Part shown: in pieces, positions 5,114 through 12,148 of the stretch
How the letters are laid out: the number at the start of each line of letters is the position of its first letter
Position numbering within the stretch: position 1 is the stretch's first letter
Assembly (NCBI GenBank): GCA_033442325.1
Contig: JAWQFM010000005.1
Location: 1,274,329-1,338,328 of the forward strand
From: Salpingoeca rosetta
Lineage: Eukaryota > Protista > Choanoflagellata
DNA length: 64,000 nucleotides
Direction: 5' to 3'
The notes under the pieces: model-generated
Databases searched by the model: none
Told to the model about the DNA's origin: nothing
What the model saw: only the letters and a program-made list of their open reading frames with translations
Translations under genes and position numbers: made by a program

Positions 5114-8100
5114 TCACCGAAACCACGCAATGCCAATGTCAGCTCCAAACAGCTTGTTTGTGGCGTCATATGCATACACGGCCACATCGATGATGGGGAG
5201 GGCTGAAAGGCGAGAGAGAGAGGGGGGGTGCGGATGCATAATGTGAGCACGAGGCTGGCATACAACAACGAGAGAAACCAACGCACAGAGATAGTGTGTG
5301 CGTGTGTGTTGTGTGTGGTTGCGTTTTGTTCGCACCTGCTGTGTTGAATGTACGAAGCTGGAACGGCGTCGTTGATTCCTCGGTAAAGTCAAAGCGGCAG
5401 GCGTCCGACACATAATCAACCTGGCGCAACGGGAAGAAGAAGAAGAAGCAAAGGGCACCACAGCAACCACACGAGTTGGCAATGTCAGAATATGGAGCAG
5501 AGAGCTCAACACAATGGGCCAACACGAGAACACCGACGCACTCCACCGCGCGCGAACAACAGCAAGTGGTGCATCCGCGTGTGCATGCACGGACGGACCG
5601 TGGGCAACGCGTCGTTGTCTGAGGAGGCAGACCAAGTTATCGTGTCGCTCTTGAACTGCCGACAGTGGCACATGGAAGATGCAATTTCACAAAATAGAAA
5701 AGGTGAGTGAGCAACACCTGAAGGACGCCAACGTACACTCACTCACTCACTCACTCACTCACTCACTCACTCACTCACCCACACACTCACTCACTCACAC
5801 ACACACACACACACACTCTCTCTCTCTCTCTCACTCACTCACCCACACACTCACTCACTCACATGCGCGCACACATACACGCACGCACGAACCATGGCCG
5901 AGGTCCCAAGAGCGCTGCCGTGGGTGGTGCCGTACCACACTGCATAGTCGCCGCAGTGAATCACAATCTCCTGCTTTGCTTCCACCGACATGCGCTGCAC
6001 AAGGCAAATGCACAAAGTGATAGTGAGAGTGAGAGAGCATGTGTATGTGTGTGTACGTGTATGTATGTGTGTATGGCAGGTGCGGCAATGAGTGAATACT
6101 GTGTGATGCGCTGATGCTAGTAGACACATACACAAACACACAGACACATGAGTAAGCTGAAGACGCACCCGCAAAGCGGTGAGAAACATGGGGCTGATGG
6201 GATAGGGAACCTCAAATCCACCGCTGACGGAAGAAAACCACCTGAATCGCGCCATACATGGTGATGGTGGCCGTCAATTAACAACAGGCACGTCCACGGC
6301 AAACATGCAAATGAATCTTGAACTTGCATGTACCTGCCACTTTACCCCTGCCATGGACACTGTCACACTCCCAACCTCACACGCACACACAACACACACA
6401 CGCGCGCGCGCACGGACACACACACATACGCACACGCGCACGGACACACACACACACACACACACACACACACACACACACACACACACACACACACACA
6501 CACACACACACACACACACACACACACACACACACACACACACACACACACCAGTGCTGGCCTGGGGGCGAGCTTGAGAACCAGCTTGATGACAGGCGAA
6601 TTCTGCGAGTGGGCGGAATGCCCGTCCACCCGCCGTTGGTCTGCATGCATGACCAAGATGGCGGTTGTGAGACGGTTATACACACATGTGTGTGTGAGTG
6701 AGTGAGAGAAACGTTAGAGGGGAGACACAGAACGTGACACCTGTCAACACGAAAATACACGATTGCACAATCACAGACAGCGCAAGCACACCACCAAACA
6801 GCAACTGCAGCACAGAGAACAACAACGGCGACAGCACTCACAAAGTCGCATGCCAGGTACGCGGGCGCCGCTGATGCCGTTGGAGCTGTTGTTGATGTGC
6901 ATTCAGCAAGGTTCAGTGAACACACATCACACAAAGACGCATAAGAGTGTATGCAAGCGAGAACAAAATGCATGCGTGGCGCGGTTGCATGTGCTGAAGA
7001 CGGACAACCACAGTGAACGACCAGATACATAGCCGTTCAGTTAAAATGGACAAAGCGCGTGCAAGACGACCGGCCACGCACCGATCCAGTACCAGCCATC
7101 TGCTGGGTTGGCCGTGTGCACGAGGATGTCTGCGCAGGTGCGGGCTGGGTTGGAAGCACTCGCACCGCGCGGTGTTCGCGTAAAGTCGAGTTTGAACCGG
7201 GTCGCACCAAAGCCAAACCCTGCAGCACCGAAAGGGAGTGCACCAGCGAGTGATGGTCAGGCGAGATGGAAAAGAAGAGTATGGTAAGAAGGGACAATGG
7301 CAGGATAGAACGAACAACAACCACGTGCAGGCGTGCATTCGCACACGCACACCCACACACATGCACACACACGCACACACACACACACACACACACATGC
7401 ACACACACATGCACACACAAGCACACGCACACCACACGCACGCACATGCACACATACACATGTGTGTGGGTGCTGACCAATGAGTTCTGATGCGGAGCCG
7501 TGATCAAACAAGGCAATGTCCTGAATTGGCAGTGCGAGCGCGTTGGTGGTGGCAAACACAAACGACGCATGTGCTGCTGTGTGTATGTCGTTTGTCGCGC
7601 ATCCTGTCATCACCAAGCACACACACATCCAAACAAACGTGAGCAAACGGGCTGTGTGGAGCCGTGCGCAATCGTATACAAGTGTGTGTATGTGTGTGTA
7701 TGTGGGTGTATTTGTGTGTATGTGTATGTATGTGTGTGTGTGTGGCAAGTTGAGTCATGACCCACATCAACCACGAATTGCAGTGTTATCCCGACCATCG
7801 TGCGTGATGATGGGCTCCAACACGACGCTCTGCGACACGAATCGGCTTGGATGCGTCCAGTAGACACCCGTGTTGTCCCTGTCAATGCGTGAAAGCACGC
7901 GCAAAACCAAGTGGAGTTGTATTGAGTGTGACGCAGATGTTGGGCCATGTGCAGGGTACACAACCATAAGGTCTGCTTTCACAGAACAGTGTTCAGAACA
8001 GTCAGCGAGCACACTCCCACCACGCAAAGCATGCAGACGTAAGCGTTCGAGCCACAAGCTCAGGCGCGGTTGTACAAATGCTCAACTCACGTCTTCGAGC

Positions 8101-11100: not shown

Positions 11101-12148
11101 CTGGGCAAGGTTGGACAATGCTGCTTCGACGTCTTGCTTAAGCGCACGTTCCTGCAGCTCCGACCGAAGCTGGCTTGTGTTGTGCGCCGCGTCGCTGGCC
11201 ACGCTGGCCAGCCCTGACGCGAGCGTGGAGACGCGGGTGGGCAGCCGCTCTGCAGCAAGCTGGGACACCTCCATGGCTAAGCTGGTGGTGTTGACGTTGA
11301 GGGTGCTGGCGATGGTGCTCTCCACGCCCATCAGGCGCTCGTTCATTGCATTCACGCCAACCTCCCGCCCGCCAGCCTGCGCGATTACATCACCCTGTGT
11401 GCGTGAATGTGTGCGTATGTGTGAGTGTGTGTGTGTGTGTGTGTGTTTGGTGAAGGCACAATGAAACACGCCACAGGTTGTTGCCAACCAGGCAACAACC
11501 AGGCAACTGAGGTCGCTGAATGGAACGTCACACACGTGCACATTCAGCCCCCCCCCCATACACACACACACACACACCACGCGAGACGACAAACACCATG
11601 AACAGGCACTGCACCTGGTATGCGACGATGCGAATGCCCTCTGCACTGGTAACAATTTGGTTCTCCAGGGCAGTGCACACGAGCTGCCGAAAGGGTACAG
11701 GCTGACCAGTGGGTCCGCAGAACACAGTCATCGGGCCCCCCTCAAAGCCAGCAGATACGTCACACTCGACCACGCACACGCCGTTTGGCGGCACACTGCT
11801 GCAGTTATGAGCAACAGGGTATTCACTGAAGTCGCCTGCGTTCAAGTGGCAGTATCCATCGCCGCCACTGACCTGTGTTCCCACTGCCACATGCAGCAAC
11901 GCCACTGCAAGCCAGCCCAACAACACCACCGCCCTCAGTGCTGTTGCTGTCGTTGCTGCTGTCGCTGCACGGCGGTGACCACGAGAGCCAGATCGTCGCT
12001 CTTGACCACCAGCTCCTCCTTCACCTGCCTTCCTCCTGTACCTCCCTGGCTTCTCCGTCGCAACACAGGCAGAGCTTGCAGAGACGGTATGGGGGCCACT
12101 GCCATGCTCGCTCTGCGTGAGCTGCTCGTCAAGCTGCTGCCCTCGCAT
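5114..12148 (-). CDS. Membrane-anchored or secreted protein: hydrophobic segment, sushi-like Cys domain, coiled coil, COLFI + half-COLFI + COLFI; no collagen triple helix
   Basis: Spliced translation: ALRAVVLLGWLAVALLHVAVG; YCHLNAG..CSSVPPNGVCVVECDVSAGFEGG..VFC..LVC; heptad region ERLMGVES..DRLSSVESAIA. COLFI-1: [83 protein letters not shown]. COLFI-2: GASASNPARTCADIL..DGWYWI..CDF..AKQEIVIHC..DAC..LPIIDVAV..FGADIGIAWFR*. The introns I checked are GT-AG and in phase, including across the 10397-10700 gap. Confidence 0.88.
8533..8650. repeat. (GAAT)n tetranucleotide repeat, intronic
   Basis: Direct reading. Confidence 0.95.
10397..10700. other. Assembly gap flanked by (CA)n
   Basis: Run of N inside an intron of the COLFI gene. 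Confidence 0.99.

Follow-up and report, generated by a model that had tools for sequence, protein, structure and literature searches.

A choanoflagellate protein with tandem COLFI modules and a predicted coiled-coil rod, without a collagen repeat

Positions 5114-12148 of the window, which is the whole 64,000-nucleotide stretch of Salpingoeca rosetta contig JAWQFM010000005.1 analyzed here, hold, on the minus strand, a single gene of 21 exons that corresponds exactly to the deposited S. rosetta protein PTSG_11789 (865 aa; UniProt F2TZ55). The coding span was obtained by exact mapping of the deposited protein (P0001) onto three minus-strand frames; all 21 exons are coding, every intron is bounded by GT-AG, and the stop codon lies at 5116-5114. 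The exon joints are based on the deposited model together with splice signals and orthologous transcripts, and the spliced sequence that we analyzed is the deposited protein only, with the exons also profile-searched singly. PTSG_11789 was already a catalogued, public gene before the present analysis, although a literature search with its gene identifier returned no match, and the S. rosetta genome annotation drew on RNA-seq from eight conditions (PMC4054682). A TGA at 8089-8087 was considered as an alternative stop that would yield a single-COLFI product ending after exon 11; it was rejected, as a strong splice donor overlaps it and both the deposited model and the orthologs read on.

The span contains three COLFI-type modules. 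A preliminary description of this DNA had recognized one of them from close matches in the minus-strand translation, and those matches are present where it had placed them: the Pfam COLFI profile (PF01410; 233 positions, cut-off 26.2 bits) scores 213.4 bits on the spliced protein (E = 3.7e-63), and the human procollagen III C-propeptide (4ae2) is matched at E = 1.2e-21. COLFI-1 is complete (residues 334-546, exons 4-11, 8165-10189, minus strand), with 116.1 bits over profile positions 10-233. Exon 5 is above the cut-off even on its own (30.3 bits, profile 46-66), and exon 10 matches profile positions 195-220. COLFI-2 is a remnant (residues 547-655, 7176-8164, minus strand) that matches profile positions 179-232 only, at 22.2 bits, below the cut-off. 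What it retains is the first Cys region together with the final ~55 profile positions, and it has ~135 residues fewer than its Hartaetosiga counterpart; the first Cys region and the residues past the deletion point share the uninterrupted exon 11, and the later introns are too short for the missing part. COLFI-3 is again complete (residues 656-865, exons 14-21, 5117-7175, minus strand; 87.3 bits over profile positions 16-232) and forms the C-terminus of the protein. It is 29% identical to COLFI-1, its exon 14 scores 23.1 bits alone, and its score is below that of COLFI-3 in Hartaetosiga.

Alignment to 4ae2, read against published descriptions of the domain (PMC5353611, PMC2852846), indicates retention of the Asp/Asn/Asp calcium ligands and of Cys1, 4, 6, and 7, whereas the interchain Cys2 and Cys3, as well as Cys5 and Cys8, are replaced, leaving the eight-Cys framework of metazoan C-propeptides incomplete. 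An arginine still occupies the position of the chloride-site Arg39, and other residues stand in place of Gln62 and Arg42. The COLFI domains of Monosiga brevicollis have likewise lost Cys2, 3, 5, and 8 (PMC2852846). Judged from these sequences, the eight-Cys framework is a metazoan elaboration and not a requirement of the COLFI family.

At the other end, the protein begins with a low-complexity, basic tail (residues 1-69, 11942-12148, minus strand; 11 K+R vs 6 D+E) that is unique to PTSG_11789 in our alignment, being missing from its paralog and orthologs. A hydrophobic segment follows (residues 70-90, 11879-11941, minus strand), about 70 aa past the first Met as had been described; the best 19-residue Kyte-Doolittle window covers residues 71-89 with a mean of 2.2 and is the sole such peak. 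The segment aligns with the N-terminal hydrophobic segments of three relatives (P0002, P0003, and P0005), and a small-residue -3/-1 site comes after its core. Residues 70-90 may act as a signal anchor or as a signal peptide with a long n-region, and type II anchoring of the protein is a possible reading of the sequence; the tail would be cytoplasmic, provided that the segment is an anchor. However, PTSG_00532 and both Hartaetosiga orthologs begin directly with an ordinary signal-peptide-like segment, and because these relatives resemble ordinary signal-peptide proteins, the type II anchor is only a candidate reading.

Behind the hydrophobic segment lies a Cys-rich module (residues 95-178, 11615-11866, minus strand) in which six Cys and an N-glycosylation sequon are invariant across the alignment, a conservation that argues for a lumenal or extracellular location. 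Its structural neighbors in the ESM Atlas are Sushi proteins throughout (TM by query, 0.48-0.57), and the Foldseek list for its AF2 model (pLDDT 60) is led by CCP proteins, with a best E of 0.6 that is not significant. The module gave no Pfam match and has six Cys as against four in Sushi/CCP, and an AF2 run on residues 92-300 (the N-terminal module and the rod) without an alignment was poor (pLDDT 46). The structural neighbors suggest, short of proof, that the module is Sushi/CCP-like.

Between the Cys-rich module and COLFI-1 stretch ~155 residues (179-333) with 3 Pro and 9 Gly, which we refer to as the rod. Its first part is encoded by exon 2 (residues 179-288, 11065-11394, minus strand) and carries three N-glycosylation sequons, with a helix at 192-298 in a low-confidence AF2 single-sequence model. 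Its last part is encoded by exon 3 (residues 289-333, 10796-10928, minus strand), where a/d heptads flow into the COLFI stalk position and align to the stalk of 4ae2. The preliminary description had seen here ~150 aa of heptad-rich sequence; the length stands, but the heptad signal is local, being strong at residues ~225-260 and 295-345. Over the whole 155-residue rod, power at period 3.5 is not above that of shuffled sequences (0.12 of shuffles were at least as high as observed), and the best period is 3.6-3.8. A Pfam match to DUF7310 gives a hint of a coiled coil in the exon 3 part of the rod. Residues 271-331 carry continuous a/d heptads with 3/4 core spacing, and the heptad phase is unbroken across the annotated exon 2/3 splice. 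An in-frame exon 3 acceptor at 10990-89, which would add 20 residues, was rejected; its use would interrupt the heptad phase, which stays continuous with the annotated acceptor at 10930-29.

Modeled in three copies, a number that we imposed, the chain gave a parallel, in-register coiled coil with a score of 0.74, as against 0.00 for the best of 3 controls; the runs agreed in at least 72% of contacts, and partner pLDDT was at least 81. In calibration, 21 of 30 proteins with structures solved as pairs reached the mark used for such complex models, as did 0 of 23 solved as single chains, with the caveat that eukaryotic families with solved relatives may pass through memorization by the predictor. 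The contacts run i-to-i with 3/4 spacing over residues 243-331, and Asn 250 and Asn 277 of two N-glycosylation sequons are among the contact residues. No confident inter-chain contact lies past residue 331, and the model named none within the COLFI globule. The earlier proposal of a trimeric coiled coil in place of a triple helix is thus supported as to the coiled coil, whereas the trimer is putative: because three copies were imposed, a dimer or a tetramer is also possible. The only pointer to three chains rather than two or four is continuity with the procollagen stalk, as the rod runs unbroken into residues that align to the stalk helix of procollagen III, which is three-stranded. Taking the models together, we predict that residues 271-331, the last nine heptads of the rod, form a parallel, in-register coiled coil that is most likely three-stranded.

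Intron 3 (10190-10795, minus strand) contains an assembly gap, and Gly-X-Y exons concealed in it had been named as a finding that would overturn the collagen-less reading. The gap is a run of N at 10397-10700 set between two (GT)n tracts, with pure dinucleotide repeat on both flanks. Exon 3 ends at 10796 (phase 1) and exon 4 starts at 10189, and joining them restores a Gly codon and keeps the frame. The orthologous, gap-free Hartaetosiga transcripts carry no additional residues at this junction, and the alignment to human procollagen III (4ae2) crosses it without a gap; because both run straight across, a hidden Gly-X-Y exon is very unlikely. No Gly-X-Y run of at least four triplets occurs anywhere in PTSG_11789, in agreement with the reported absence of such repeats upstream of COLFI, or in the relatives P0002, P0003, and P0005. 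The sole three-triplet run in PTSG_11789 lies within the N-terminal tail, at residue 42.

The layout is that of a family. An N-terminal hydrophobic segment, a six-Cys Sushi-like module, ~150 helical residues, and three COLFI domains follow one another in the same order in Hartaetosiga balthica, in H. gracilis, and in an S. rosetta paralog on contig 1 whose N-terminal part is annotated as PTSG_00532. These relatives share the module order with PTSG_11789 at 34% identity overall and with an invariant Cys framework. The paralog and the Hartaetosiga orthologs each have three COLFI units, all of them complete and joined by short linkers; PTSG_11789 differs from them in its 69-residue tail and its internally deleted COLFI-2. 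Word-index searches with P0001, its COLFI-1 region, and an alignment as queries recovered a single Hartaetosiga protein besides P0001 itself.

Choanoflagellate COLFI domains unlinked to a triple helix, as stated in the preliminary description, have indeed been in print since 2008, when M. brevicollis COLFI proteins without a collagen repeat were published (King 2008; Exposito 2010, PMC2852846; Hynes 2012, PMC3308698). PTSG_11789 resembles them in its choanoflagellate origin, in having no collagen repeat, and in the loss of Cys2, 3, 5, and 8. Compared by their descriptions, the M. brevicollis papers list domains only, and we found in them no mention of a preceding coiled coil, a Sushi-like N-terminal module, or three tandem COLFI domains. 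Thus, collagen-free choanoflagellate COLFI proteins are known, and what is new here is the layout of rod and tandem COLFI.

PTSG_11789 is also like the fibrillar procollagen C-propeptides (CPIII, 4ae2 and 4ak3; CPI, 5k31) in its full-length match, stalk helix position, base region, and calcium ligands, and it shares with them the intrachain disulfides Cys1-Cys4 and Cys6-Cys7. In procollagen, the domain sits at the end of a helical stalk of three chains, and the rod is modeled to lead into COLFI-1 in a similar way. In contrast to procollagen, however, PTSG_11789 has ~150 helical residues instead of the Gly-X-Y helix and no chain-recognition insert, and its COLFI domains stand in tandem with no known cleavage, whereas a fibrillar collagen has a single C-terminal propeptide that is removed by BMP-1/tolloid. 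The long Gly-X-Y region N-terminal to COLFI that marks a fibrillar collagen is absent.

We favor, with a probability of roughly 0.6, a model in which PTSG_11789 is a rod-and-head protein that is located outside the cell and probably forms oligomers. Residues 70-90 would route the chain into the secretory pathway with its N-terminus inside the cell, the segment being either kept as a type II anchor or cleaved. Outside the cell, the small, disulfide-rich Sushi-like module would be followed by the ~150-residue helical rod, which would continue into the part of COLFI-1 that matches the three-helix stalk and calcium-binding base of the procollagen C-propeptide; two further COLFI units, one a decayed remnant and one complete, would follow. 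Chain association would be supplied mostly by the rod and not by COLFI. A COLFI that has no interchain Cys and is repeated in tandem is more likely to provide distal globular heads than to serve only as a trimerization nucleus. By analogy with fibrinogen-related heads on coiled-coil or collagen stalks, such heads might serve binding or network formation, a function that we purely infer.

A different view of the same parts is that COLFI-1 nucleates a homotrimer as it does in procollagen, with the coiled coil following, and that the product is a type II surface trimer like the class A scavenger receptors. We consider this unlikely, although it deserves weight. COLFI-1 is complete and conserves the base region, the calcium ligands, and the Arg39 equivalent, but the interchain Cys2 and Cys3 are gone, the Gln62 and Arg42 equivalents are replaced, the model places no confident contact past residue 331, and nucleation has no need of tandem COLFI copies. 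Similarly, the 69-residue basic tail ahead of a ~20-residue hydrophobic segment, with no other in-frame Met for a secreted form, would suit a type II protein, yet the relatives have plain N-terminal signal-like segments. The likeness to class A scavenger receptors lies in the type II topology, which is putative here; PTSG_11789 has no collagenous segment and no SRCR head, Pfam giving no SRCR match.

It is far less probable that a single chain makes a pseudo-trimer, its tandem COLFI units packing together as the three petals do in a procollagen C-propeptide. The three complete, closely linked units of the orthologs and the paralog speak for such packing, but with ~135 residues missing from COLFI-2 three petals cannot form in PTSG_11789, the stalk helix precedes COLFI-1 only, and the modeling confidently predicts an inter-chain coiled coil upstream. 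A similarly low probability applies to the view that the gene is a decaying duplicate with little or no function, as its deleted COLFI-2, lost Cys, lower-scoring COLFI-3, and unique tail might suggest. Against it, each of the 21 exons is open and the GT-AG sites are intact; the heptads, the six N-terminal module Cys, the calcium ligands, and Cys1, 4, 6, and 7 have been kept; and the published annotation used eight-condition RNA-seq (PMC4054682).

The rod-and-head reading bears on how COLFI came to collagen. In the usual account, fibrillar collagen originated in the animal stem lineage, when a triple-helix gene became fused with a COLFI gene. To our knowledge, no description has yet been given of the protein context in which COLFI existed before this event. 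The preliminary description suggested that this protein reveals the role of COLFI before it was joined to collagen; our data are compatible with that suggestion as an evolutionary hypothesis. Tentatively, and with the odds against it, we propose that the family with a Sushi-like module, coiled coil, and COLFI has kept the C-propeptide in the state that preceded collagen: COLFI would have begun as the C-terminal globular head of a three-stranded alpha-helical rod, whose stump would be the short coiled-coil stalk found in every animal procollagen C-propeptide, and the later addition of a Gly-X-Y array upstream of the stump would have given rise to fibrillar collagen. The family offers a concrete, testable pre-fusion context, in which a helical rod keeps register with the procollagen stalk and bears between one and three COLFI heads that lack interchain disulfides. 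It also bears on whether COLFI trimerizes without collagen and without interchain cysteines, and on whether a binding function of COLFI predates its propeptide role. S. rosetta is genetically tractable, and its genetics could tie the protein to the cell coat, the theca, or the rosette matrix.

Angiopoietins, fibrinogen, and ficolins likewise combine an oligomerizing coiled-coil or collagen stalk with C-terminal globular heads, a likeness in the way of working and not in family membership. A full fibrinogen-related domain was not found in P0001, and the N-terminal subdomains of COLFI-2 and COLFI-3 of Hartaetosiga pass the Fibrinogen_C profile.

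Our results support a model, to which we assign a probability of about 0.6, in which PTSG_11789 encodes an extracellular rod-and-head protein whose chains are joined by a coiled-coil rod and whose COLFI units (fibrillar collagen C-propeptide or NC1 domain, Pfam PF01410) form distal heads. The gene finding is real and correctly placed in the window. The multi-exon gene was read by eye from three-frame views on the minus strand (window 12148-5114), and its exon 1 (178 aa), compared by HMMER with 1.84 billion representative proteins, is 100% identical over 178/178 residues to the deposited S. 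rosetta protein P0001 (PTSG_11789; XP_004997835.1; UniProt F2TZ55), which is 865 aa long and carries the database name 'Fibrillar collagen NC1 domain-containing protein'. P0001 maps back exactly, its coding sequence lying in 21 exons that span 12148-5117 and its stop codon at 5116-5114. The spliced sequence used throughout is this database entry only, and exons were scanned for families singly. The exon model drawn independently from the sequence equals the deposited one at all junctions except the exon 3 acceptor, where a site at 10990-89 would insert 20 residues and disrupt the heptad phase; the deposited acceptor (10930-29) was accepted because the heptad phase stays continuous across the junction.

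The Pfam COLFI model matches P0001 with 213.4 bits over three stretches: COLFI-1 (residues 334-546; 116.1 bits, profile positions 10-233), COLFI-2 (residues 547-655; 22.2 bits, profile positions 179-232 only) and COLFI-3 (residues 656-865; 87.3 bits, profile positions 16-232). This bears out the preliminary description of a collagen-less COLFI protein, which saw COLFI-1 but missed the COLFI-2 remnant and COLFI-3. The absence of a collagen repeat also holds, as no Gly-X-Y run of at least 4 triplets occurs in P0001 or its relatives. Nor does an assembly gap appear to conceal one. The run of N at 10397-10700, flanked by unbroken dinucleotide repeat (10291-10396 and 10701-10790), lies in the intron between exon 3, which ends at 10796 with one base over, and exon 4, which starts at 10189 and supplies the other two bases of a Gly codon, and the splice across the gap restores the frame exactly. 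In the Hartaetosiga orthologs, which come from transcriptomes and so are gap-free, the exon 3/4 junction holds four extra residues only, without Gly-X-Y, and P0001 aligns with the human procollagen III C-propeptide without gaps over residues 318-346, spanning the junction at 333/334. Because the frame is restored, the transcript orthologs run through and this alignment is gapless, there is strong indirect evidence, the gap letters themselves being unread, that 10397-10700 would hold neither a Gly-X-Y exon nor any other coding sequence.

The literature already contains collagen-less COLFI proteins from choanoflagellates. King 2008, as cited in PMC2852846 and PMC5120351, places COLFI domains and collagen repeats on separate proteins in Monosiga, and Hynes states this separation for both Monosiga and S. 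rosetta (PMC3308698). In the searched literature, which covers journals other than subscription titles, PTSG_11789 is not named, and we found no report of a coiled coil preceding a COLFI domain in a choanoflagellate, or of tandem COLFI units. The rod and tandem COLFI architecture is a modest but genuine addition, and its evolutionary reading is testable.

The rod (residues 179-333) contains 3 Pro, 9 Gly and three N-glycosylation sequons, and residues 192-298 are helical in a low-confidence, single-sequence AF2 model. The earlier view of about 150 heptad-rich residues survives only locally: hydrophobic periodicity at 3.5 is strong at ~225-260 and 295-345, but across the entire rod the signal at that period does not exceed that of shuffles (fraction 0.12; best period 3.8). 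A model of residues 240-548 in three copies, with the chain number imposed as input, scored 0.74 against 0.00 for the best of three controls, with at least 72% contact agreement between runs and partner pLDDT of at least 81. The score mark was passed by 21/30 proteins solved as pairs and 0/23 solved as single chains, counts that are only rough for three copies, and where complexes of a family have been solved, a passing score may come from structures memorised by the predictor. The modelled rod is a parallel, in-register coiled coil, with confident interchain contacts that are i-to-i at 3/4 spacing from residues 243 to 331; in this three-copy model, residues beyond 331 are absent from the confident contacts, which thus include no COLFI–COLFI contact. 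The coil ends exactly at the stalk-helix position set by the procollagen III alignment, and in solved procollagen C-propeptides the stalk helix is itself a three-stranded coiled coil (PMC5353611). Because the modelled coil ends at that position, the proposal that a coiled coil occupies the place of the triple helix is correct in topology. The most apt view of the rod is that it prolongs the C-propeptide stalk far towards the N-terminus. The rod, probably three-stranded and running into the COLFI stalk, would keep the chains together, and the tandem COLFI units, which lack interchain cysteines, would serve as distal globular heads, more than as assembly nuclei alone.

The version first put forward, in which COLFI nucleates assembly of a type II anchored protein, is a possible but less likely alternative. 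COLFI-1 aligns with the C-propeptides of human procollagen III (4ae2; E 1.2e-21) and procollagen I (5k31; E 1.2e-18), and its cysteines and ligands were read from the 4ae2 alignment and compared with the solved trimers as published (PMC5353611). The cysteines of the base disulfide (Cys1 and Cys4) and of the petal disulfide (Cys6 and Cys7) are retained, whereas the interchain Cys2 and Cys3, as well as Cys5 and Cys8, are replaced. Exposito and colleagues described this same pattern in the three Monosiga COLFI modules (PMC2852846); Sharma and colleagues noted that the last Cys is often missing from choanoflagellate COLFI. The Asp, Asn and Asp calcium ligands and a counterpart of the chloride-site Arg39 are retained, whereas the counterparts of Gln62 and Arg42 are lost.

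As for the anchor, the sole strongly hydrophobic segment of P0001 (residues 70-90) follows a basic, low-complexity tail, and by the positive-inside rule the N-terminus would be cytoplasmic. A small -3/-1 pair comes after the segment, and the S. rosetta paralog PTSG_00532 and both Hartaetosiga proteins start with ordinary signal-peptide-like segments; judged from sequence, either a retained type II anchor or cleavage is possible. The next in-frame Met occurs only at residue 141 or later, so that, barring an unannotated exon further upstream, Met12148 must be the first residue of every secreted or membrane form. Entry into the secretory pathway is expected from what lies downstream: six Cys and a sequon, all of them invariant, and COLFI domains with calcium sites. 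The conserved six-Cys module (residues 95-178) has no match in Pfam. The structures closest to its ESM Atlas model are all Sushi/CCP proteins, and its AF2 model (pLDDT 60) gave weak Foldseek rows only, with CCP proteins at the top; these models tentatively suggest a Sushi-like fold.

That PTSG_11789 is a decaying paralog is an unlikely alternative. Alignment with the Hartaetosiga proteins shows that COLFI-2 retains its first Cys region and last third and has lost the ~135 residues between, at window 7794-8189 (exons 11-12) relative to residues 497-723 of the H. balthica ortholog P0003; the remaining ends are in frame and conserved. The deletion is genomic rather than an annotation slip, because the first Cys region and the post-deletion residues share a single uninterrupted exon 11 and the introns after it are too short for the missing part. 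A single-chain pseudo-trimer, in which the three COLFI units of one chain would stand in for three chains, is unlikely here because COLFI-2 is truncated. Full COLFI-2 is present in the contig-1 paralog and in both orthologs, P0003 (933 aa) and P0005 (H. gracilis; 955 aa), which share the full module order of P0001 and have three complete COLFI units each. The paralog (loci L002 and L003; contig 1, ~1,200,900-1,207,658, minus strand) is collinear with P0003 residues 24 to 850. P0002 (PTSG_00532, 333 aa) appears to represent only the N-terminal module and rod of that gene, and this deposited model is probably truncated. A whole-genome COLFI profile scan matched, at exon level, at least two loci, the contig 5 gene and this paralog; the number is a lower bound.

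The first ~50 residues of Hartaetosiga COLFI-2 and COLFI-3 also pass the Pfam Fibrinogen_C cut-off (P0003 508-554, 38.6 bits; P0005 756-805, 33.3 bits), and P0001 has no Pfam Fibrinogen_C match. The same overlap of COLFI and fibrinogen domains was described in a paper on Plasmodium LCCL proteins (PMC11285972). The Hartaetosiga matches hint that choanoflagellate COLFI could be intermediate between metazoan COLFI and fibrinogen-related domains.

Several minor features of the locus were also observed. Over residues 271-331 the core of the modelled coil consists largely of Leu, Ile and Val, with His299 (window 10898-10896) and His306 (10877-10875) at successive core positions; through this pair the rod could respond to pH, metal ions or halide ions. 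The alternative exon 3 acceptor, a second in-frame AG, precedes the annotated one by 60 bases (window 10988-10929) and would add 20 residues; it is probably unused, as the heptad phase would break, and alternative splicing there may occur. All introns have GT-AG ends and nearly all are filled by dinucleotide repeat, with (AC)n/(GT)n tracts of 60-130 bases dominating across window 4800-12000; the assembly gap falls within the longest such tract. Further repeats are (TGAA)n, arrayed at ~8530-8640, and (CACT)n, at ~5738-5800. Finally, an open frame of ~57 codons (window 12106-11936, minus strand) overlaps the gene in frame +1 relative to it, beginning with an ATG that follows the annotated start by 42 bases.
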